Positions 3,342 through 33,515 are shown, counted from the first letter of the stretch. The stretch: DNA of 64,000 nucleotides from Paramoeba atlantica (GCA_977017575.1 CDRNVI010000148.1:1-64000); one strand, 5' to 3'. The notes: a model not told the origin generated them from the sequence alone. Program-made: numbers and translations.

Positions 3342-6300
3342 ATGGATCCTCCTTTCTCTCCACGAACACCATCTTCTACTCCAAATGTCTCCCCTTTGGT
3401 GAACCGAACGCTCTCTCCAACTCTCTCTCCTGTTGGTCCAACAACCGCAACAACCAGACCGCTTTCCCCAACAGACTTTGTGATGATTCCTTCTTCTCCT
3501 TCCTTTTCTCCTCCACCTGAACCCGCTCCCCACCCCGATTCTTCTCCGACCAGTCAATACTCTCGAATCTCTCATGCAACATTCCCTCCTTCTCCACATT
3601 TGTCTCCTTCTCAATTATCAACAACAACCCCTCTCACAGTCCCCTCCTCTTCATCCTCTTCAAAAATTCGGAGAAGAACCAAAAAGCCTCGTTCTCTTTC
3701 TCGTTCTCGTTCTCGTTCTCATTCCCGTTCTCCTTCTCCTTCTCCTTCTCCTTCTCCTTCCTCTTCTTCCTCTTCATACTCTCTTTGGTTCCAAGTGGGT
3801 CTCTTGGTCATCATGACAACCATTTTAACCCATTTTTTCTCTTCTTTTTACGGATTTGTGGGGATGTGTATCTTAGTGGTCCTCTTAAGAGCAAAAAGGC
3901 CTTCTCTTTCTACTCCTTCTTCCTCTTCTGGTTCTTCATCTTCAATCTCTTCTTCAATCTCTTCTCCAATTTCTTCTCCATCTTTATCTTCTACTCGATC
4001 TGAAAATGAGTATGAACTCCGTGAACTTCCAAGTGATTTATCTCTTGAGTTAGAAATTGGGAGTTTGAAAGAGGGAGAAGAAAGAGCAGAGAGTTTTCGG
4101 GAATTAGATTCTGGAAAGAAGGATAATAAACAAGTTGAAGAAGGTGAAGAACAAAAAGACAGAGATCCTGTGAAAAGGATATCCAAAGAACATCATTTGA
4201 AACGGAATTCAAAAGATCGATACTCCACCCCACCCACTGGAGCCCACTTTTCTTCTTCTTCTCTTATCGAACCGCCTCTTCGAAAAACGACCTCACTTTT
4301 CTCATCTTCTTCAACTTCTCCATCACTTAGAAAATTCTTTTCACCACAAAAAGAAAGACGTGAGGAGCAACTCCTTCGAAATCAGCCTGCTTTTCCAACA
4401 ACAGAATCAGAACAACTTCAACGTGTTGAAGAAATGAACAAATGCCTCGAATTATATGAAGTCGAGAAAAAGAGAAAGGGAGAATCCTACAACGTCAACA
4501 AACACTTAATTCATTGTTGTGTTGTCAATGATGCTGTCATGGCGCAATTCCTCATTGAACAAGCTGGTGCAAATCCTCTCTATCATCTTACAGATCGTGA
4601 TGTGGGGATTGGAGACGAGAAAAGCAAAATTTTTTCCGCAGGAGAGACTCCTCTTGATGTTGCAACACGATTCGAATGTCAAGATGTTCTTGTAATTTTA
4701 AACGAGAAAAAAAAGAGAGGAAAGCAATGGATATTTCCTTCCATTCCTTCTTTTATGTCTCCTCTTCGAATTATGGTTGGAGATGTAAGGAGACAACAAC
4801 AGAATGGAAGTGATAGTATTATGACTCGAAGTACTGGCGATAGTACAGCAGGAAGTGGACCAACATCTCCTTCTTCAAGTGATGAAAAAAGTACCTTTTT
4901 TTCTCCTCCTACTTCTCCTTTTATTGATTCGAAAAAAGGTCGACCAACTTCAGTTCGAGTTCAAACTTTTAATCAGCCAAAAGACTCTCCTCTTCTCCGT
5001 GTCCCAAGAACACCATTATCTTCTTCTTCTTCTTCTTCTTCTTCTTCTTCTTCAGGACCGCCAAAATATGCTGTAACAAAAGCTGTTCGCCCCGCTCCTC
5101 CTCCTGAAGTTGATTCTCTTGTTGATGGTTTGAGAGAAGGTCCAAGTCGCGAAGAGTCAAGAAGAGAGTTTGCAACTATATTCTCTGCAATTGATTCTCC
5201 AAGGTTTGTTGATTTTGTGAGTGTGTGTGTTGTGGTGATTTAATTTTATTTGGTTTTTGAGAGTTTTTATGATTTGTAGGAGAGAGAGAATGTTGTTGGG
5301 AGACTGGAGAAGCAACAAAAATCAATTTTCGAAAGAAACTCGAACTCGTGCCACTGCAACAAAGTTTGTAACCATTTTACTCAGAATATCTTATTTGATT
5401 GTTTTTTTTTGATTTTTGTTGTGTTTTCTTCTCTATCTTTCTTCCTCCAGATATTACATCATGGAATATTATTGGAATTTGATCACTTATCTTGGGAAGA
5501 GAAAAGAGAGAAGAACCCGTCTTGATGAGTTTTTAAAAGAGAGTACGTCTTTTATTAAAAGAAGAGAGAAAATAATACAAAATTGGGGATCCGAATGTAA
5601 AAAATTTAACTTTTGTGACAGGGAAATACCCCAAACAAGATGCAAAGAGGATTCTTCAGGATCATTATTTTATGGAATCAAAATTTTTGAGAGTAAAAAG
5701 AACACAAATGAGAATCGAACATTTTCAGGCACTGCCTCTCTCTCTCATTCTACTCTTTCCTTTTCATTTTTTCTCTTTCTTTCTCTTTTTTATTTTCTCT
5801 TTTTGTCTTTTCTCATACAAAATCAATCCAGATTCTTTCCCTGATTGGAACTGGAGGATTTGGACAAATTTTTCTCTGTCGCAAAAGAGACACAGGAGAG
5901 ATTTTGGCGGTTAAAAAAATGTCTCAAAAAATATTGAAATTGAGAAATAAGGCTGTTCATGTGAAGAATGAGAGAGATGTTTTGGCGAAAGGGTATGATT
6001 CTCCATGGTTGGTCCATTTACTTTATTCTTTTCAAGGTTTGTTGGTATTCTTTTTTCGATTTTCCTTCTTTGTTTTTTTTCAAGTTTCCAAAAAGTTGAA
6101 ATCAAATTATTGATTTTCCGTTTCTCTTTTCTCTTTTCTCCGTCTCAAAGATGAATCCTCTCTTTATCTTGCAATGGAGTATGTCCCAGGAGGCGATCTC
6201 AGAGCTCTCTTAGACGCAATCGGAGTTCTCGCATCTGATTGTGTTAAATTTTACTCAACTCAAATGATTATGTGTATTCGCTCGTTACATTATTTGGGGT

Positions 6301-22430: not shown

Positions 22431-22987
22431 CAAATCAAAAAAAAAAACGATTTTCTCGTTCAAAAAACGAGTGTTGAAAAAAAAGACAAAAAAGAAAGAG
22501 AAGTTGAAACACTTTTATCATTTTGATTATTACTATTTTACATAGAGTTAAAAAGACAAAAATACCCTCAAATCATTGGAGCGAAAGTCGCAAGAAAATT
22601 GCGACAATGAGTGTCTTATTCTCTTTATACTACAACAACAAAACATACTAAATTTCAGGAAAAACAATCAGGCATTCTTTTCACCCAATGTCAAACAAAG
22701 TTTCAGAAATGTGATTTATCTCAAACAACACAAAATATTTTTACAGTAATGAGAAGAAAAATCATTTAATCTACTTTTGAGATGGTATTTTTTAGAAAAT
22801 GAATTTTTTTTCTTGGAAACAAAATGAATCATTGAGTAATACACTCAACCACATCACAACATCAAAGATAGAGAGAGATGGAGAGAGGAAGATTGGGAGA
22901 GGGGAACATTGATTTTTCTGGTGCTAAAAAAAGAACCCTATTTTTTCTTTCCCTTTTGTTTCAGTTTTTTTGGATGTCTCTCTTTTC

Positions 22988-23003
22988 CACGGGGTTCTAA
23001 CTC
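22988..23003 (+). repeat. Left terminal inverted repeat (16 bp)
   Basis: CACGGGGTTCTAACTC, exact reverse complement of 30934-30949. Confidence 0.85.
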
Positions 23004-23160
23004 AAGCCAAATGAAAAAGACCAAGAGTTTCTTTGACATCCAATTCAGGAATGTGATTTTGACGTTTGGATTATCATAGGATTCTTTCAATCTCAGTGAA
23101 ATATTGGGATTCATTTGAGCGAAGGTCACGAAAAAGAACGAACTTTCGTTGGTGTGGCAT

Positions 23161-23230
23161 TGGGCAAAACTGGGCGAAACTGGGCGAAACTGGGCGAAAC
23201 TGGGCGAAACTGGGCGAAACTGGGCGAATC
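23161..23230 (+). repeat. Subterminal 10-bp tandem repeat (TGGGCGAAAC) x7
   Basis: Five perfect units flanked by one variant unit at each end (TGGGCAAAAC, TGGGCGAATC). Confidence 0.95.
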
Positions 23231-23728
23231 TGCTGTGGGTTTGCGAAAGGGTTGGCACCATACAACAAGTGAGAGATAGGAAAATTGGTTTGTGGTCAAG
23301 ATTTTGGAGATTCTGTGGTGATTCATTTGTTCTTGAAAGTTTGGTCTGCTTGTGCTGTTGTGATCAGAAATTCCTTGAGAGTTTCTGTTCCCTGCAAATC
23401 TTTGAGAAGGAACAAATATCGTGAACAAATAATTAAAATTACTTGCAAAAATTCCAATTTTCAGCATCTACAAACTCTTGACTACTCTCCACCAGACCAA
23501 AAGATCTCATCAACACTCAGAGTGTGGTTCCACCCTGAAACAACCCCCACCCTCTCCCCTCTTTCATTGTCCTCCAAACACTGGTGGAGTTCTGCAGTGA
23601 AAACACACTTGAAATTGGATCTTCTGTAGTTTTTGGTTTCCCTTTCTTTTTTTTCTTAAAATTAGTGCCACTATTCTCAGTTGACTGAACTTCCCTCTCC
23701 TTTTTCACAGCGTTTCCAAGAGAGAAAA

Positions 23729-26700
23729 ATGGATTTAATCCCTGATGGACTCCCAAAGAAACGTGAGTTTCTTGTTGTTTACCAATACCTTGCGCTGACC
23801 CTTTACCATCATTTTGACAAGTTGAGTGAGGATGAGAAGGAGTATGATGCGATCTCATTTAATGAGATTGTCGCGAAATGTTCTCAATGTTGCCCAGAGA
23901 TTCGATCAATTGAGAGCGCAAAATTTTCCACTTATATCCCACCATTGATATCTAAACTCTTTGATGTCAAAAGGGTGAGGAACTGGAAAAAATACCCTCT
24001 GAAACATTCCACTGGAATCAAACCAAGATTGGATCCCTTTATCCAATCATTTTGTCATCATCTTCTAAAAAGAACTTGGAAGCAAACAACTTTGTTTGAA
24101 GTTGGGTTGCCACCACCCAGAAGGTAAGTGGTGTTCTTTTCTTTTTTAGTGTTCACTGAGAGTGTTTTTTGAGAAAAAAAAGTGTATTTGAGGGGAAAAA
24201 TGAAATATTTTTCTTACCCCCATTTTTCTTTTTTAGAAGAAGGAAGAAACATCAGAAGGTGGGGCTTGCCCATGACAGGAGTGAGTTGAGTCCTGAACCA
24301 ATGATGATTACAAAGGAGGAGGAGAAGCCATTATTCTTTTCCCCCTTTTTTGAGTTTATTGATGATCATCACCATGATTTGTGCCCTGGAATCTCTGATA
24401 CTGCAACAGTTGTTCAGAATGCACAAAGAATTGCAGATTCTGATGGAGTTGTGAAGCGGAAATATATAGCGGAGAAATCGAAGTCTGGGTCCAGAGTAAT
24501 TGGAGTTCTTCAAGCTGGAAAACTTTTTTTTTCATTTTGTGAACGGGTTCTCTTTTTTTATCTATTTCTTTTTATTGATAAAATATTTATTGATGAGGGA
24601 TGATTTGTGTGATGATGATGATGGAATGGGGATAGTGTGTGTGGTGGATAGGAAAAGAAATATTTACATTTTTTTTCTTTTGATTCTGTGAAGGTTCGTC
24701 AAGAAGGTAGTTCTTCAGCTGCAGGTCGCTTTTGTCCCTCATGTCACCAAGCAATCCAATACTTGAAAAAGTGGAATGCAAATCAAGAATATTTAATGGT
24801 ATGTGTTTGTCTTTTTTTTTTGAGATCTTTTTAAAAAAATATCATCCTGTATGATAAAAAAGTAAAGATTTTTTAACTGACTTTATTTTGCTTGTGTTCC
24901 AATAGAAGAACCAAGAACAGCCTCCAGCCTCTTGTCATCCTCTCTCTCTTCTTGTACATCAAGTCATTGAACAGTATGGTGATGAATGGGTGAACTCCTT
25001 CAATGGGAAATTTATTCAAACCCAACTTGAGGTGCTTTTGAACAATACTCCAAATGGAAATCGATGGGACCAAGAGATTTTAAATTTCTTTGCAACACTT
25101 CAGTTTTATGGGGGTAAGCGAGTGATTAATCTTTTGCGTGGTAAAGGATGCGAGGGAAAAAAAGGGGATTTTCATTATGATCTTAAAACAACAAACCTCT
25201 GTATTCCAGCTGATTCAACTCTCCGTCGACTCATTCCTCCTGTTGAGCCTTATCAATGGTTTGATGATAAAGGTGCTCAAGTTACCCAACGGATTCAGAT
25301 CCTTGTTCAAATGCTCAAAAAACAACGAATCGATGGTCATGATCTTCAAGGAGGTGGGCTCATTTGTGATGAAATGGAGATCAGATCTGGTCTTGTATAT
25401 TTACGTACATCAGGACGGTTTGTGGGTCTTGTTGACAAATATTTAAAAGATTGCGAATTGGATCCAAATCTATTGGTTGACTATACACCAGAACTTGCAA
25501 AAAAGGTTTTTTTTGTTTTGTTTTCCAAATAATTGTTTTCATAAATCCTTAAAAATATACACAAACAAAAAACTAAAACTAAAACACTAGTTGTTGTTGT
25601 TTGTGTGTTTCTCTCTTTTTCTTTTTCTTTTGTTTTAAAACAAAAGTATTAATAGGTGTGTCAAATTTTTTTTATTTCGAATTGTGGTACCATTGCATTC
25701 CCAGTTACATTTATTCCAACAATATCGCTGACAGGGACCCAGCTGTTTGAAGTGTTTACAAAGATCTCAAATGAAATGAAGGAAAAGGAAATCGTTGTTA
25801 TGTGGACCAGCTCTGATGGATTTTCAGGTTCTCTTGATTATTCAACGAAAATGAAGGATGTTTTACATTTTTTTGATTATGTTCATCTGGTCAAGAATGG
25901 TCGAAATAACTTACTCAATCGACTGATTCAAATTGATGGAGAGAAATTTTTGATGAAAACCCTCTCGAACTGGTGGTCCAATTCCGTTGAATTACAACTT
26001 GCTTTGAAGTTAGATGATATATGTCCATCAGATAAGCAAAATCTTGTCCCTGTGATGAATTTGCTCCGTGCTGCCACCAAAATCAAGGAATTTGGTCAGA
26101 ACACTGCGAATGAAAGGGAAAAAAAGAAAGTCTTTGCTCTTGTCAAGTATCTTGAAATGTTGCTTTGTCTTCATGATCTTTTTTCAAACAACTCTTGGGA
26201 CATTGATTGTAAGATTGAGACAGCAACAGGATTGATAAAACGACTCGAGACCTACCAGGCCCAATCAAAAAGACAGTTTACAACCACAGAGTTCTTTAAC
26301 CAGGTATTTTATTTTCTTTCAATTGATTTATTATTTATTATTTAATTAAATGAATTACATGACACACCACACACTCTCTTTTCAACTTTTGTGGTCTAAT
26401 TGTTTTCCCAAAAATTGTTTTTGCAAAAATGTTAATTATATCTTTTTTTTTTCTTTTTCAATAGACTCTTCAGACTTTAAACAACTTAGTCACCTTTTTG
26501 AAGAAAGAAGATGTGTATTTTATGACCCATCGAAGAACATCAATGTTAGGAACCAATTTGTGTGAAAATCACTTTTCTGTGATTCGAAGCAAGGTTTTTG
26601 TTTATTTATTATTTTCTTTTCTTCTTTTTTCTCTTTTACACCTTCTTTTCTTTTATGTTCTTTTCTCCAATATTTTTTCCCCTCTTCCTCTCTTTTTGTT

Positions 26701-29631
26701 TACCTCCTCTATCCTTTGGTCATTTTTCTTTCATCTTATATCATTTTTCTTTGTGTTTTCTTTTGTTTTTTTGTCTTTTTCTACAGATCCGATACCCATC
26801 TCTTTATGAGTATGCTTTTTTAGAGTCACATGGATGGATTGAATTGATCAAAAAATTCTCCCCAAATCGGTTGTATGCCATGCCCAAACGCACTCTTGGC
26901 AAGAAATCTGCTTTGAAGTATAATGACCAAACAGGAGTTATCTTTGATTTCTCTGAGCTTTCTTCGTTGATTTCTTATACTAAGGAGAAAAGAAAAAAAT
27001 CTTCTTCTTCTCTGTTTCCATCTGCAACTCCAGAGCAAGTTGCTCTTGCTAAAATGATTGCTGATGCATACCGTTGCACCCGAAAAAGATTGACAACTCG
27101 ACAAATGACCTGCTTAGTTGTTGGAGGTGATGAATCACATCGAATTGTTCAAACGCTTCAAACATCTGATTCTTTCCCATCACAACTTTATCCATGTCCA
27201 TGGGAAGATTGCCCAAAGCAAGTTTGGATTTTTTTTTTTTTTTTCAAGAAGGAAAATTCAAGAATTTTTTTCTTTTTTTTTTTCTAATACAATAATTATT
27301 AACAGTACCGATTTCTTGGCTATTTAAATAACCATCTTGTTAAAAGACATAGTGGTGAACATCCATTTCCAACTGAAACATCAAAGAATTCAAATGTCAC
27401 TCTTACTCCTCCAAATGAACCAGACTTCTCAAGCCTCGAAGGACAAGTGGTTGAAATTGAGGACAGATCTTGTGAAAGTGTGGTTGAAATTGAGGATGCA
27501 TCTTGTGAAAGTGTGGAGGAATTTTGTAAAAGTGTAGTTGGTAAAAAGGATGATAACTGTTTTGGTGGGTTTGTTGTTTGGGATGGTGAGACAACAGGTA
27601 AAACGAAGGGAAGTAATAAGCAATCATTTGTTTCTCTTGCCCTTGTTGCTTGGAAATTTGGAGAGTCATCCAAAAAAAAACTTGAATTTCATGAAGCAAT
27701 TAATCCAGGTATTTTTTCTTCTCCTCTCTCTTCTCTCTTCTCCTTTTTTCTCTTTTTTCTTTTTAATTAGAAATACAACTCACAATACCAAAAACAATAG
27801 GGGAGGAGATTCCAATAACTTCCCAGGCTTACAACATTCACGGATTGTCACATCAGTTTCTCCGAAAAAGGGATACATTTGATCAAGTCTTTCCTCGATT
27901 TTTTCGATTTTTAAATCTTCTCCGGACAAAAGAAAAACCACTTGTGATGATGATTGCTCATAATGGTAAGGGTTGCGATGAACCAACATTGAAGAATGAC
28001 TGTCAGCGTTATGGGATTCAGGTTCCTTCATTTGTACGATTTTTTGATAGCAAGGAGTTATATTTCGAGATTGGACGAGACAAAGGCTCTTTGGATCGTT
28101 ATCCAAAATGGAGTGTCGACCATATTTGTACAACATTTTCGATTGATAGATCATTACGGGGAAAATGCCATGATGCTTTACTTGATGCACGGGTTCAACT
28201 GAAAATTGTTGAATTTCTTTATGAAAAATACAAAACCGAAAATGCGAAACTCAAAATTCACCTGGTCCAAAATGCACCAAATGAAGAATATCGCCAAGCC
28301 ACATCATCTGATGCCAGGAAACCTGACGAGAGAATTTTAAAGAGGGTACTGCCAGAATTATCCCTTTCTCAATTTTTGGTGGATTTTTATGTTGAGAAAA
28401 AAATTGTAAGAAGGGAGGGGAAAGGGAAGAAGAGGGAGAACAAGGTGAAGAAAGAAGAGAAGGAGAAGGAGAAGGAGAGAGAGAAAGGGAAGGAGGAGGA
28501 AGGAAAGAGGAAGAGGAAGAGGGAGGAAAGTAAAACAACTTGGGAAAGTGAGAGAGAAGAGGAGAAGGAAAGAGAAAGGGAAAGAGAGAGGAAAGAGAGG
28601 GAGAGAGAGAGGGAGGGAGAGAGAGAGAAAAAAAAAAGAGAGAAAATCAAGAGAGAAAAAGAGAAAAAAGTAAGAGAAAAAAAGGAAAGGCAGAGAGAGG
28701 GAGAGAAAAGGAATTTCACAACAGGGCTGCGTAAATATTCAGAACAACTGAACTTTAAAAAATCGTATTCTTTTTTGGTTGGTTTCTCATTTTTCTCTTC
28801 TCTTTTTTCTGTTATCTGCTCACCACAAATAAAATAGCCTGAAACGGAGAAGTTTTTATCCTCTGACCCACAAAAAAGAATTTTACTGTACCCTAATCTC
28901 GATAGGTCTTCTGTTGAAATTTTCCCAAAGGATCTCAATAGTTTGGTATCTAACGCTTATTTGAATGATTCACTAATTGATTTCTACTTGAAGTATTTGA
29001 TGAAAGTATTTGTTTTTTCATTTTTTTACTTTTTAAAGGGTTTTTTTTTTTAAAGGGTTTTTTTTTTTAAAGGGTTTTTTTTTTTAATTTTATTTTGTAG
29101 AACAAACAAACAACTGCCTTCTCATTTCTCTGTCTCTCTACATTCTTTCTCACCAAGTTGGAGAATTTGGAACACGATTATTCAATTCTTTCACGCTGGT
29201 TCTTGGACTATGATAAAATCGACTATTTGTTTCTTCCTTTCAACATTAAGGATTCCCATTGGTCTTTATTCGTTCTTAGTATCCCAGAACAAAAAATGTG
29301 GCACCTTGATTCAATGAGAGGGTTTTTGTCACACCGTGTCGACACTGTTATTGAAAAAATCAAGAAGCTTTTTCAGTCAAACTTTCTTCCCAAGAGATTG
29401 GGGAGATTGGAAAGATTGGAAGTGGTGAAACCCATTGTACCCCAACAGGAAAATGATGTGGATTGTGGAGTCTTTGTCATGAAATATGTTGAGGAATTTC
29501 TGTTGCATTTGAGCCAGGAGGAAAAACCAGATAGTTTTCTGACTCAATCATGGTTCACCAAAAACAAAGAACGTTCAGAAGTCTCCAATCTTATTGTTTC
29601 ACTTGCAGCTGAGAAAAATCAGAGCCAATAA
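23729..29631 (+). CDS. P-element-family DDE transposase fused to C2H2 zinc finger, DEDDh 3'-5' exonuclease and Ulp1/SENP (C48) protease; ~1,566 aa, 11 exons
   Basis: Exons 23729-24123, 24237-24546, 24694-24798, 24906-25505, 25656-26303, 26465-26593, 26787-27221, 27306-27708, 27801-28777, 28838-29005 and 29101-29631 join in frame (4,701 nt). Transposase: NGNRWDQEILNFFATLQFYGGKRV, ICDEM, SSDG, DYVHLVKNGRN, NLCENHFSVIR. Finger: CPWEDCPKQYRFLGYLNNHLVKRH. Exonuclease: WDGETTG, AHNGKGCD, HDALLDA. Protease: LNDSLIDFY, SHWSL, HLDSM, PQQENDVDCG. An extra upstream exon is possible. Confidence 0.88.
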
Positions 29632-29685
29632 AACCACAGAAACAAACACAACCCAAACCATTTTTTTCCTCTTTTTATTTTATTT

Positions 29686-30654
29686 TTATTTTTTGGAGAA
29701 AGGAGAGGTTGTTGAGGAGGAGGAGAGTTTGTTACAATAAGAAGGACAAGAGGGGGTTTGTTCCCCCACTTTCTCTCTCTTTTTCAGTGGAGGAGGTACA
29801 GGGATGGTCAGAGCTTCAATTTTCTCCCGGCAAAGAGTGTTTGGATCAACACCAAAAAGTCGTAAATAAGATCGGTGGATAATAAAAAGGCCAACCAATC
29901 TATCGGTTGCAGAAACAGACAAAACATCTTCCAAACTATCGTCATAACCTTCTTCTGTTCCATGACACAGTTGGTCAGTGTCCAAAATGAGAACATCCCC
30001 AATTTTTAAATTAAAAGCAAGATCAATACCCCCAATCTCAAGCCCACCTTGTTGGTCATCATCCAAATGGATCATAACCAAAACAGAAATAAAATCATTC
30101 CTGTCGTAATGCATAATTGATCTTCCAGCAGGACACATAAATAAGTGAAAGATTCCAAAATTTCGTTCCAGCAAGTTGTTTTCCTCTAAACAATTCCAAA
30201 TATCTGGTCGATATCTTTGAACCCTCTGAGAAAGTGTTCGCCCAAGGTTTTCAAGACAAGGTTGCAGAACTGGCTTCACTTCAGCTTCATAACGCCCCCC
30301 AATTCCAGCAGGGTGGATCGTGGAGTGACCTCGTTGCCTCCATTCACCACAAAACATAAAGGCTCTCTCCCCTCTTGTTGGGTCATTTGAATGATCCCAA
30401 TGTGTCTCACGACAGGCCAACAGAGCTTGTTGAAAATCCTTCATTTCATCGCGAGTAAATACTTCCTTGAGAAAATGGGCCCGATAACACCACTTTCCCT
30501 GTCGCTCAACTTGTAAATAAGCTGAGCTATTAACACGAAGACAATTTGGGTTGGGCTCCCATGTTGGCTTTGTATTCGTTTTTAGATATCGTACCAGTCT
30601 GAGAAGTCCTGACCTCTTCTTTCTTTTCTTTTTTTGAATGGGAGAGTCTTCCAT
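29686..30654 (-). CDS. TET/JBP-family 2-oxoglutarate/Fe(II) dioxygenase (Naegleria Tet-like); intronless, 322 aa
   Basis: HxD motif MHYDRND; GGLEIGG..IGDVLIL strand pattern; distal His in LCHG; DRLVGLFIIHR resembling the TET RISLVFYQH strand with its 2OG-binding Arg. Confidence 0.8.
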   Translation of the reverse strand: MEDSPIQKKKRKKRSGLLRLVRYLKTNTKPTWEPNPNCLRVNSSAYLQVERQGKWCYRAHFLKEVFTRDEMKDFQQALLACRETHWDHSNDPTRGERAFMFCGEWRQRGHSTIHPAGIGGRYEAEVKPVLQPCLENLGRTLSQRVQRYRPDIWNCLEENNLLERNFGIFHLFMCPAGRSIMHYDRNDFISVLVMIHLDDDQQGGLEIGGIDLAFNLKIGDVLILDTDQLCHGTEEGYDDSLEDVLSVSATDRLVGLFIIHRSYLRLFGVDPNTLCREKIEALTIPVPPPLKKREKVGEQTPSCPSYCNKLSSSSTTSPFSKK

Positions 30655-30933
30655 GGATAATAAGGAGGGGGAGGAGGAAGGAGTTGTTCACGTTCTTGGT
30701 GAAAGAGTTGTAGAGTCAGAAAAACTAAAAATGATTGCGATTTAATCGTCAAAGACTTTCTCTTTGTTTCTCTACACAGCAGCTTCCACAAGAAAAATCA
30801 CAAAACTCAAAAAAAAAAACAAAGAAAAAAGTCACGACTTCAAATTTTTTTGAAAATTAGGACATCCTCAGGACCTTTTCCTTCCAGATGTCAAGAGGAG
30901 TTTTTGGAAATTTCGAACCGTGGAGTTTTGGAG

Positions 30934-30949
30934 GAGTTAGAACCCCGTG
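30934..30949 (-). repeat. Right terminal inverted repeat (16 bp)
   Basis: GAGTTAGAACCCCGTG, exact reverse complement of 22988-23003. Confidence 0.85.
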
Positions 30950-31733
30950 AAATTTTTGGACGAGTTTTTTGTGTGTTGTTTGGCACGAGAAGAGTTTCTC
31001 TCTCTCTCTCTCCGCTCTCTTGTTCTTCTTCAAGGGTGCTTGTTTCTCGGTCTTGCTTCAAACATTGCTGGGGAGAAGGTGGTTGATATGTAGTCTTTGT
31101 ACTTTGCCAGTCTTCCAGAGTGGGCGCACAAGCAAGGGGGTGGTCGCACTTGTCTTGCCGGTTGATGCTGCTCCGAAAAGATTGAATGGGCGATCTTGGG
31201 GGGCGATTTTACTGTTGTTCAAGGTCCTTCACTCGTCTGTTCGGATGGTTCTCAACCAGAGAGGTTTTCGGGATACTTGAGAGACACTTTTTTGACAGTG
31301 TTGAATTTTTTCAGGTGCTCTCAGTCGGTCTTCTGCAAGGTCCTCTCTCTTTTCGGAACCTGGGGGTCGGTTTGGAGCTGATAGGGCGGTTACCTTCGAG
31401 CTGCTTGAGGTCATCATGCCACCAGTGTTTGTTGCCGTCAGAGATGGGGGACGAGAGGTGTGGATCCTATCTCCCCAAGCAAGATGGTTCACTGATGTCC
31501 AATCACCAGATAAGAACGAAGGATACGCCCCCTCTTCCTTGTGATTTTTTTTGAACTCATCTCTTTTGAACTAATTTTCACATCAGACGCAAAAAGCCAA
31601 AAAATTTCGGAAACATCATAAATTTTCGTGGGATATCATTGAAATTTCGATGAGTTTTCGGGAACGTCAAGACGTTGGGGTTGGAACGTTCATTTTTTTG
31701 GTTTTTGTTTTCGGAGAGGAATGAGACGTTTTC

Positions 31734-32126
31734 CTACTGTTTCACTTTCCAATTGAAAAAAATTTCGCTGACAGCCAAGTTGAACGTGATCCAAAAGAAA
31801 AAAGGTAAATCAAAATGAAAATCGATCTCTCGAGCGAACAAGAAGAGAGGAGCGTACGTTCCAACAAACGAGATGAACACAGTTATTAAAAAGAAGGAGA
31901 GAAGATGAAAATCTGAATATCCATTCAAATGAAGAACCTCTCGATTGTAATGAGGATTATCAGAAACGAGAAAATCTCCAATGACAAAACCAGTGTACAA
32001 AAACAGAAGGTGAAAGAAAGTTTTGATTGGTTCGAATCCAAAATAATAAGGAAAACAAAGACTGTAAATCCCAGAAATGATGGTTAAAAGTGTGAAAGTC
32101 CAACTAACCAACCGTCCAGCACCCAT
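31734..32126 (-). CDS. Small multi-pass membrane protein, unknown function
   Basis: 130-aa ORF MGAGRLVSWTFTLLTIISGIYSLCF.. with about four hydrophobic segments. Confidence 0.6.
   Translation of the reverse strand: MGAGRLVSWTFTLLTIISGIYSLCFPYYFGFEPIKTFFHLLFLYTGFVIGDFLVSDNPHYNREVLHLNGYSDFHLLSFFLITVFISFVGTYAPLFLFAREIDFHFDLPFFFWITFNLAVSEIFFNWKVKQ

Positions 32127-32219: not shown

Positions 32220-33515
<1,296 letters not shown>

Follow-up and report, generated by a model that had tools for sequence, protein, structure and literature searches.

A divergent TET/JBP-type dioxygenase as probable cargo of a DNA transposon in the Paramoeba atlantica assembly

TET-carrying (TET+) DNA transposons are known from fungi, where they include Kyakuja, Dileera, Zisupton, hAT, Harbinger, EnSpm, Plavaka and Helitron elements (Kojima 2025, PMC12730594). 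Eleven fungal transposon lineages with TET are given in that work, with neither P nor piggyBac elements among them and none from outside fungi; exchange between transposon lineages is described, and an anti-silencing role is proposed (Kojima 2025, PMC12730594). The TET enzyme CcTet from Coprinopsis cinerea also demethylates 6mA (PMC12730594). The literature that we searched contained no report of TET-carrying transposons in protists.

The layout of a TET-carrying transposon is present in a 64,000-nt stretch of the Paramoeba atlantica assembly (GCA_977017575.1, CDRNVI010000148.1:1-64000; hereafter the window), in which transposase exons and a dioxygenase gene lie between two terminal inverted repeats (TIRs; Table 1). 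The first-pass annotation of the dioxygenase, made from the DNA alone, had quoted the strings MHYDRND, GGLEIGG, IGDVLIL, LCHG and DRLVGLFIIHR, together with an N-terminal NSSAYLQVERQG..RAHFLKEVFTRDEMKDF block, and each of them was located in the 322-residue translation of the minus-strand ORF. In residue numbering, HYD occupies positions 182–184, LCHG 228–231 and IIHR 258–261. These motif blocks are kept in five external homologs and in 12 places of the same genome, and their conservation in relatives indicates that they are not chance matches. Across 32 full-length family members with a mean column identity of 19%, H182, D184, H231 and R252 are invariant, so that the complete HxD...H...R set reported earlier stands. 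The assignment of the arginine within DRLVGLFIIHR needs correction: the conserved residue is R252, in DRLVG, invariant in the 32 members, and not R261, in IIHR, which varies across the family and is replaced by histidine in the family member P0001 and in the paralog on contig C201. The basic stretch KKKRKKR was likewise present as described, and a K/R-rich N-terminus is shared by most family members and by the bridging Tet_JBP proteins discussed below, consistent with a putative nuclear localization signal. The ORF is an intact gene, with a full-length frame and every invariant residue.

Table 1. Features of the transposon and of the dioxygenase gene within it (positions counted from the first letter of the window).
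Feature	Position	Strand	Basis
TIR-bounded DNA transposon, 7,962 bp, containing the dioxygenase gene	22988..30949		Perfect 16-bp inverted termini; similarity to the copy on contig C145 starts at 22988
Left terminal inverted repeat, CACGGGGTTCTAACTC	22988..23003	+	16-mer, exact genome search
Probable transposase exon, P-element/THAP9-type RNase H N-terminal region	24990..25532	+	Pfam TNP-like_RNaseH_N E=4e-4, 21.1 bits, below the 24.6-bit cut-off
Exon with C-terminal half of a DEDD (RNase_T) exonuclease domain	27845..28837	+	Pfam RNase_T E=0.0015, below cut-off
Exon with Ulp1/C48 cysteine-peptidase catalytic domain	29158..29631	+	Pfam Peptidase_C48 E=3.7e-22
TET/JBP-superfamily dioxygenase gene	29686..30654	-	Single exon, ATG start, 322 aa plus stop
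R252 codon, predicted 2-oxoglutarate-binding arginine	29899..29901	-	Invariant; on conserved Arg of canonical Tet_JBP proteins
H231 codon, distal iron-binding histidine	29962..29964	-	Invariant; on Tet_JBP distal His (hhalign) and on the distal-His strand of gamma-butyrobetaine dioxygenase (BBOX)
H182-Y-D184 codons, HxD iron ligands	30103..30111	-	Invariant in 32 members; on Tet_JBP HxD (hhalign)
KKKRKKR basic stretch, residues 8-14, putative nuclear localization signal	30613..30633	-	Sequence; K/R-rich N-termini in most relatives
Right terminal inverted repeat, exact reverse complement of left	30934..30949	-	Exact genome search
AAATTTTT, candidate half of 8-bp target-site duplication	30950..30957		Also found directly beside the left TIR of the C145 copy

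Conventional searches gave little indication of the family to which the protein belongs. A Pfam search of the 322-residue protein returned zero families even at E ≤ 10, so the search against Tet_JBP (PF12851) that the first-pass annotation had proposed as its check came back without a match; likewise, phmmer against the PDB, including the NgTet1 entries 4LT5 and 5CG8, yielded nothing at E ≤ 10. Two family members touch Tet_JBP at E 0.018, and family members peak at about 19 bits, short of the gathering threshold of 34.9 bits. The Pfam Tet_JBP model is blind to this dioxygenase family, which is too divergent for it. When a profile was built from 11 family members (A1) and run against the PDB, the sole match was gamma-butyrobetaine dioxygenase, over 32 residues around the distal-His strand (E 0.011); we took this short match as a superfamily-level signal and dismissed membership in that family.

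Structural comparison was more informative. The AlphaFold2 model of the dioxygenase (pTM 0.74, core pLDDT 80–94) predicts a double-stranded β-helix (DSBH) core with a TET-type N-terminal extension. The top 25 Foldseek matches of this model in the PDB are all TET/JBP enzymes, namely CcTet (the best match), NgTet1, human TET2 and CMD1. VIA-align, which is independent of Foldseek, placed TET2 (Z 17.7, 245 residues), CcTet (Z 17.6, 231 residues) and NgTET1 (Z 17.3, 215 residues) above every other 2OG oxygenase; ALKBH6 reached Z 14.6 over 171 residues, and ALKBH6 and ALKBH3 together span Z 14.3–14.6 over 171–175 residues, below the TET enzymes. In a library of viral structures, phage and giant-virus JBP1/TET oxygenases lead, with E values down to 8e-12. 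Language-model features pointed in the same direction, with 28 of the 30 nearest Atlas clusters being Tet_JBP (score 0.95).

An exhaustive HMM search of 1.84 billion representative proteins with the A1 profile recovered 164 proteins at E ≤ 1e-3. The weaker tail of this search consists of proteins that have Tet_JBP as their best Pfam family, and five of the ten sampled (P0098, P0112, P0113, P0122 and P0127) pass the curated cut-off at 35–59 bits; such Tet_JBP-passing proteins were found by the profile with E values down to 4e-14. We aligned canonical Tet_JBP proteins taken from this tail (A3) and compared the two alignments using hhalign, which gave a probability of 99.6% and an E value of 1.3e-23 over 219 columns. 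H182 and D184 fall on the HxD motif, H231 on the distal histidine and R252 on the conserved arginine, and some ten residues specific to the family are inserted between H231 and R252. Four independent lines (fold, language-model neighbors, family profile and hhalign) thus agree on the TET/JBP placement, and the protein almost certainly belongs to the TET/JBP superfamily of Fe(II)/2OG dioxygenases, as the first-pass annotation had supposed. Its more specific likeness to NgTet1 did not hold: the phmmer search that included NgTet1 was empty, and the fold Z score ties with those of TET2 and CcTet. The motif parallels to NgTet1 are superfamily-wide features. We also considered the AlkB family and rejected it, since ALKBH folds score under the TET enzymes and give no Pfam or profile signal, whereas Tet_JBP proteins are reached by the profile.

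Within the superfamily, the dioxygenase has five metagenomic homologs at 36–56% identity and belongs to a group of about 160 representatives, all of them metagenomic apart from those of the Paramoeba atlantica assembly; ten members that were sampled have neither a name nor an accession at NCBI or UniProt. In a quick maximum-likelihood tree, whose sampling comprised 32 members, the bridging Tet_JBP proteins and the JBP1/JBP2 oxygenase domains found in the same assembly, all 32 members form one clade (SH-aLRT 100) on a long stem, apart from both the bridging proteins and the JBP1/JBP2 domains. On this tree, the family is a separate, deep and unnamed TET/JBP clade. Its members do not cluster by transposase superfamily, suggesting repeated capture or exchange and mirroring the exchange among fungal TET transposon lineages (PMC12730594).

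The dioxygenase gene lies inside a 7,962-bp element, its ATG 280 bp inside the right TIR. The terminal 16-mer CACGGGGTTCTAACTC has three exact copies in the 45.7-Mb assembly, against about 0.02 expected; they correspond to both ends of the element in the window and to the left end of a second copy on contig C145. This second copy is 99.6% identical over positions 22983–30868. On its left-hand side, the similarity starts exactly at TIR base 22988 and the junctions differ between the two loci. The C145 copy is without positions 30869–31244, and its right TIR is thus deleted; similarity resumes at 31245–31749. The element is therefore present in two copies in the assembly, one of them damaged. 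About 800 bp beyond the right TIR are common to both copies, so the C145 copy may have arisen by segmental duplication or by an aberrant, one-ended event instead of a clean transposition. The 8 bp AAATTTTT occur to the left of the C145 copy and to the right of the window copy; because the left flank in the window differs, the candidate 8-bp target duplication is reconstructed across two loci. No differences separate the two copies across 29076–30868, a segment that contains the dioxygenase gene, compared with 18 substitutions over the remaining element.

On the plus strand, the interval between the TIRs holds a multi-exon gene that includes the transposase, RNase_T-like and Ulp1/C48 exons, which were searched exon by exon and left unjoined. 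The Ulp1/C48 exon is the last one, and its stop codon lies 55 bp from that of the dioxygenase in convergent orientation. The transposase exon found no match among PDB sequences; its Atlas neighbors carry TNP-like_RNaseH_N or Tnp_P_element domains. The P-element/THAP9 superfamily is recognized by an RNase H-fold transposase of P type together with 8-bp target duplications. From these domain signals, the transposase is probably of P-element/THAP9 type, accompanied by exonuclease-like and Ulp1-protease exons. Methyltransferase or glycosyltransferase partner genes are absent from beside the dioxygenase. Taken together, the gene is very probably the cargo of a DNA transposon.

Other members of the clade occur in comparable settings. 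On four contigs, one relative (P0003, locus L017) has a DDE_Tnp_4 (PIF/Harbinger) transposase on one side and a SAP-domain protein on the other, and at L017 59-nt inverted ends surround the transposase, the dioxygenase and the SAP protein. A second (P0011) is preceded by another DDE_Tnp_4 transposase and a third (P0007) by a piggyBac-type DDE_Tnp_1_7 transposase. At a fourth locus (P0006, L047), 29-nt inverted ends enclose the dioxygenase and a preceding 1,037-aa ORF in which no Pfam domain was detected. The ORFs beside P0006, the metagenomic P0155 and the other paralogs of the genome likewise showed neither a Pfam domain nor similarity to the transposase of the window. Two further loci (L040 and L041) had no convincing TIRs, and their contigs may be incomplete. 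Clade members in other uncultured eukaryotes thus lie inside Harbinger-type or unclassified TIR elements, or beside a piggyBac-type transposase. Whether the deep clade recurs in uncultured microbial eukaryotes as cargo of four or more kinds of cut-and-paste transposon (P-type, PIF/Harbinger, piggyBac-linked and one unclassified), serving as a mobile anti-methylation device, we consider an evenly balanced question. If it does, such a case would be without precedent outside fungi and for P and piggyBac elements, in a host whose repeats bear a footprint of CpG-methylation decay.

The dioxygenase matches 12 places in the 45.7-Mb assembly, among which the C145 copy encodes an identical protein. The genome has about six distinct paralog lineages, most without a recognizable transposase adjoining them, and the transposase exon of the window accompanies only a single paralog, the window dioxygenase. 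The other paralogs sit in repeated units of 3–9 kb. Linkage to Harbinger elements inside this genome was rejected, as none of 117 DDE_Tnp_4 hits adjoins a paralog. Two paralog groups are only about 39% identical at the protein level, yet have in common an upstream module of 321 bp at 94–96% identity and at least 4 kb of flanking sequence on the right (96%); they look as if a central cassette had been swapped. The module has five occurrences in the genome, matched no Rfam family and had no inverted partner within 10 kb. One paralog lineage is decaying: the copies on contigs C137 and C152 carry G232R and a stop codon, dN/dS is about 1.1 between the C149 copy and an environmental contig that is 97% identical to it, and N-terminal truncation also occurs in this sister lineage. 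Not every member of the family is therefore maintained.

Assigning the gene to a host required separating the contents of the assembly. JBP1 consists of an oxygenase and a J-binding domain, and JBP2 of an oxygenase and an SNF2 ATPase. Genuine versions of both occur in the same assembly, JBP1 as Tet_JBP with DB_JBP1 and JBP2 as Tet_JBP with SNF2, on contigs with 44–49% GC whose CpG and GpC ratios are close to 1. GC content is 30–39% in the window, at all paralog loci and at the rDNA loci, with a CpG observed/expected ratio of 0.33–0.73 and a GpC ratio of 0.55–0.73, except for one rDNA locus (L027) with a GpC ratio of 0.92; genes on these AT-rich contigs are split by introns. Contigs below C137 carry the RNA polymerase large subunits and 35 of 37 translational GTPases. 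SSU rRNA, in at least 40 copies spaced every 40–60 kb, lies on C137 and above, as does all scored rDNA. The AT-rich contig C186 encodes a complete eEF2 (1,116 bits to solved eEF2) that shares only 55% identity over its whole length with the complete eEF2 of contig C29. Two full-length EF-2 orthologs this divergent, one per contig group, indicate that two eukaryotes were co-assembled, and they argue against a single organism with two compartments, a reading that the split of RNA polymerase genes, GTPases and rDNA between contigs might have invited. One contig (C233), with NusA, IF-2 and 55% GC, is bacterial. The dioxygenase family belongs to the AT-rich, intron-rich, partly assembled eukaryote, and JBP1 and JBP2 to the other one. 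A base-J host with a third TET/JBP lineage was ruled out by the differences in GC, CpG/GpC and introns together with the two EF-2 orthologs. The first-pass proposal of a simple nuclear oxidase of this host therefore requires revision, given that the gene lies inside a TIR-bounded transposon and that the assembly holds two eukaryotes.

To assess the likely substrate, we compared near-identical copies of the repeats that bear the family. In seven comparisons, 21–69% of transitions fell on CpG sites, against a share of 2–4% of positions (binomial P between about 1e-5 and 2.5e-21); no transition excess was seen at GpC sites, and transitions were far above transversions. Between the two copies of the window element, 6 of 14 counted transitions were at CpG sites. 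Much of the overall CpG depletion is matched by GpC depletion. The CpG-specific decay is the expected trace of 5-methylcytosine (5mC) deamination or of a related repeat-directed process, making 5mC a plausible substrate in the host repeats. No C5-DNA methyltransferase (DNMT; PF00145) or SRA (PF02182) domain was detectable in the assembly, a result that says little given that the host is incompletely represented in it.

We favor the reading of a TET/JBP enzyme carried as transposon cargo with a 5mC-oxidizing, anti-silencing role and, as a whole, judge it somewhat probable; the 5mC anti-silencing function specifically is more tentative and falls a little short of an even chance. According to this model, the dioxygenase would enter the nucleus via its basic N-terminus and oxidize 5mC on the DNA of the element, and possibly elsewhere. 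In this way it would remove or overwrite the CpG methylation by which repeats are silenced and mutated, and would act as an anti-silencing cargo to the benefit of the transposon, as has been proposed for the fungal elements with TET. The enzyme could instead be a JBP-like thymine hydroxylase that makes 5-hydroxymethyluracil, an option that the first-pass annotation had also raised and that agrees with the shared superfamily and HxD...H...R set of the JBP enzymes and with the lack of detected DNMT or SRA domains in the assembly. We regard this as unlikely, given that the strongly supported dioxygenase clade is separate from the JBP1/JBP2 oxygenase domains, that the protein has no J-binding or SNF2 domain, that the JBP genes belong to the other eukaryote, that the CpG-specific decay of the host points to 5mC and that the closest solved folds are 5mC oxidases. 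Activity on another substrate, such as N6-methyladenine in DNA, an RNA base or a protein side chain, is quite improbable: TET/JBP enzymes score about 3 Z units higher than AlkB, FTO and small-molecule oxygenases and align over 40–70 more residues, and the match to gamma-butyrobetaine dioxygenase, which might be cited in its favor as a weak partial profile match over the distal-His strand, spans 32 residues only. Such a substrate would nevertheless fit the 6mA demethylation by CcTet, the top Foldseek match (PMC12730594), and the marked divergence of the clade, with its long stem and ten-residue insertion between H231 and R252.

The role of the gene could also differ from that of a cargo. An intact ORF whose catalytic set is conserved and whose N-terminus resembles an NLS is what would be expected of an ordinary host nuclear TET that serves the epigenetic regulation of its own genome and merely lies beside transposon remains; domestication of transposon-borne genes is common, and most of the six or so paralog lineages lack a recognizable transposase alongside. 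This account seems unlikely to us, in view of the position of the gene between perfect TIRs together with a transposase, the relatives within TIR-bounded elements of other superfamilies, the copies in repeated units, some of them decaying, and a branching order independent of transposase superfamily, suggestive of repeated capture or exchange. Very improbable is an inactive relic, that is, a recently duplicated passenger ORF that no longer functions: although the sister paralog lineage is decaying (a dN/dS near 1.1, G232R, a stop codon and a truncated N-terminus) and the element exists in two copies only, one damaged, the window copy is full-length, keeps every invariant residue and shows zero substitutions in 1.8 kb compared with the 18 in the rest of the element.

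TET-carrying DNA transposons as such are already known; new here are the host group, the carrier superfamilies and the enzyme clade. The occurrence of a divergent TET clade on probable P-type, Harbinger-type, piggyBac-linked and unclassified protist elements suggests that a methylation eraser is a general counter-defense of eukaryotic transposons. A compact TET lineage of roughly 300 aa that is missed by domain models also means that surveys of eukaryotic 5mC oxidation will undercount. Host repeats with CpG-specific decay offer a natural setting in which to test the conflict between methylation silencing and transposon-encoded demethylation.

The closest parallel is provided by the fungal TET+ transposons. 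In both systems, a small TET/JBP enzyme of about 300 aa stands alone as a second gene within TIR-bounded elements, related enzymes are carried by several superfamilies, and each genome has multiple paralogs, some of them decaying. Unlike the fungal elements, those described here reside in a protist, and their carriers include a probable P-type and a piggyBac-linked element; compared with CcTet, the present enzyme falls in a separate clade, at 11–13% identity, and is invisible to Pfam Tet_JBP. NgTet1 (PDB 4LT5/5CG8) is similar in size (about 320 aa), in its single-domain TET fold and in the HxD...H...R order (Z 17.3, rmsd 3.4 over 215 residues), but shows no detectable pairwise sequence similarity (phmmer E > 10), shares 11–13% identity in the structural alignment and is no closer to the dioxygenase than human TET2 or CcTet.

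Bacteriophage Tet_JBP proteins of 284–307 aa form the nearest language-model clusters, and phage and giant-virus TET/JBP enzymes are the best viral fold matches; unlike these, the present gene comes from a eukaryote, encodes an N-terminus that resembles an NLS and sits in a eukaryotic cut-and-paste transposon, with no methyltransferase or glycosyltransferase partner beside it. AlkB, ALKBH and FTO enzymes share the DSBH fold and the HxD...H...R order and are the next-best structural matches (Z 12–14.6), but with lower Z scores, 40–70 fewer aligned residues and no profile or Pfam signal. Kinetoplastid JBP1 and JBP2 belong to the same superfamily and have the same order of catalytic motifs, whereas the 322-aa dioxygenase is a single-domain protein with no other Pfam domain, in a clade separate from theirs and on the contigs of a different organism from that which carries JBP1 and JBP2 in this assembly.

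Two eukaryotes are mixed in the assembly, one represented by a core set of contigs (GC about 45%, CpG observed/expected ratio about 1) and the other by an AT-rich set found from C137 upwards. Two complete eEF2 genes are present, each matching its contig group in base composition, and they share an identity of only 55%. A further contig, C233 (locus L051), has 55% GC, carries a NusA-like gene adjoining an IF-2 gene, and is bacterial. At least 40 SSU rRNA genes, mutually 97–100% identical, lie on C137–C244; they are scattered over large contigs at one copy per 40–60 kb, with no tight tandem array, and their loci are strongly AT-rich (30–32% GC).

Table. Positions of features in the assembly, the window and metagenomic locus L047.
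Feature	Position	Remark
eEF2 gene, complete	C186:42166-44706 (L049:3168-5708)	base composition matches its contig group
eEF2 gene, complete	C29:654349-656877 (L050:3349-5877)	base composition matches its contig group
SSU rRNA genes, examples	C149 at 205, 271, 326, 370, 430, 512, 547 kb	
Transposase gene of the element	window 23681-29631, plus strand	
Polyubiquitin gene	window 32220-33452, minus strand	
321-bp module	L003:965-1285 (= C149:582669-582989)	starts CACTTTGGGTTAAAATTC
321-bp module, further copies	C137, C152, C143:39844, C164:41017	
Element of L047 (JGI metagenome 3300060905)	29-nt ends at L047:3-31 and 4465-4493	starting TATGGGGG; TIR-bounded, about 4.5 kb
JBP1 gene (Tet_JBP + J-binding domain)	C3:216376-219051 (L025:2376-5051)	allele on C30
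JBP2 gene (Tet_JBP + SNF2 helicase)	C39:572908-576033 (L026:2909-6034)	allele on C40

In every pair of near-identical repeats compared (window 22988-30868 against its copy on C145, and the extracted loci L036 against L037, L036 against L038, L009 against L015, L006 against L007, and L003 against L016), transitions were 10–20-fold enriched at CpG, and GpC sites of the same pairs showed no transition excess. This CpG-focused pattern is the footprint of methylation decay or of a RIP-like process in the AT-rich eukaryote, in whose assembled part no DNMT or SRA domains were found.

Several dioxygenase paralogs of this organism are preceded by a 321-bp module, which occurs in only five copies genome-wide, each directly upstream of a paralog. 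The module is 94–96% identical across paralog groups, whereas the proteins of those groups are only about 39% identical; it gave no match in an Rfam search, and no inverted partner was found within 10 kb. Comparison of L036 (C149:581000-590999) with L038 (C164:40000-49999) showed that the two loci have the left module in common, together with a right flank that is 96% identical over at least 4 kb; between these lie unrelated central segments of ~4 kb, each with a different dioxygenase paralog, a cassette-like arrangement. An environmental contig, L016 (ENA assembly ERZ24900291, contig ctg3200l), matches the C149 paralog locus at 97% DNA identity across 2 kb, indicating that the AT-rich eukaryote has a very close relative in that sample; the dioxygenase copy on this contig has lost the N-terminus.

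With its exons examined one at a time, the transposase gene of the 22988-30949 element appears to run on into exons of exonuclease-like (RNase_T) and Ulp1/C48 protease type, which would be an unusual fusion. The polyubiquitin gene, with at least five ubiquitin units head-to-tail, lies 1.3 kb past the right end of this element. The metagenomic element of L047 encodes a dioxygenase of the family together with a 1,037-aa ORF without known domain, which may be an unclassified transposase.

The core organism possesses true JBP1 and JBP2 genes, which mark it as being of the kinetoplastid, base-J type. JBP1 and JBP2 are related to the dioxygenase family studied here at the superfamily level only.
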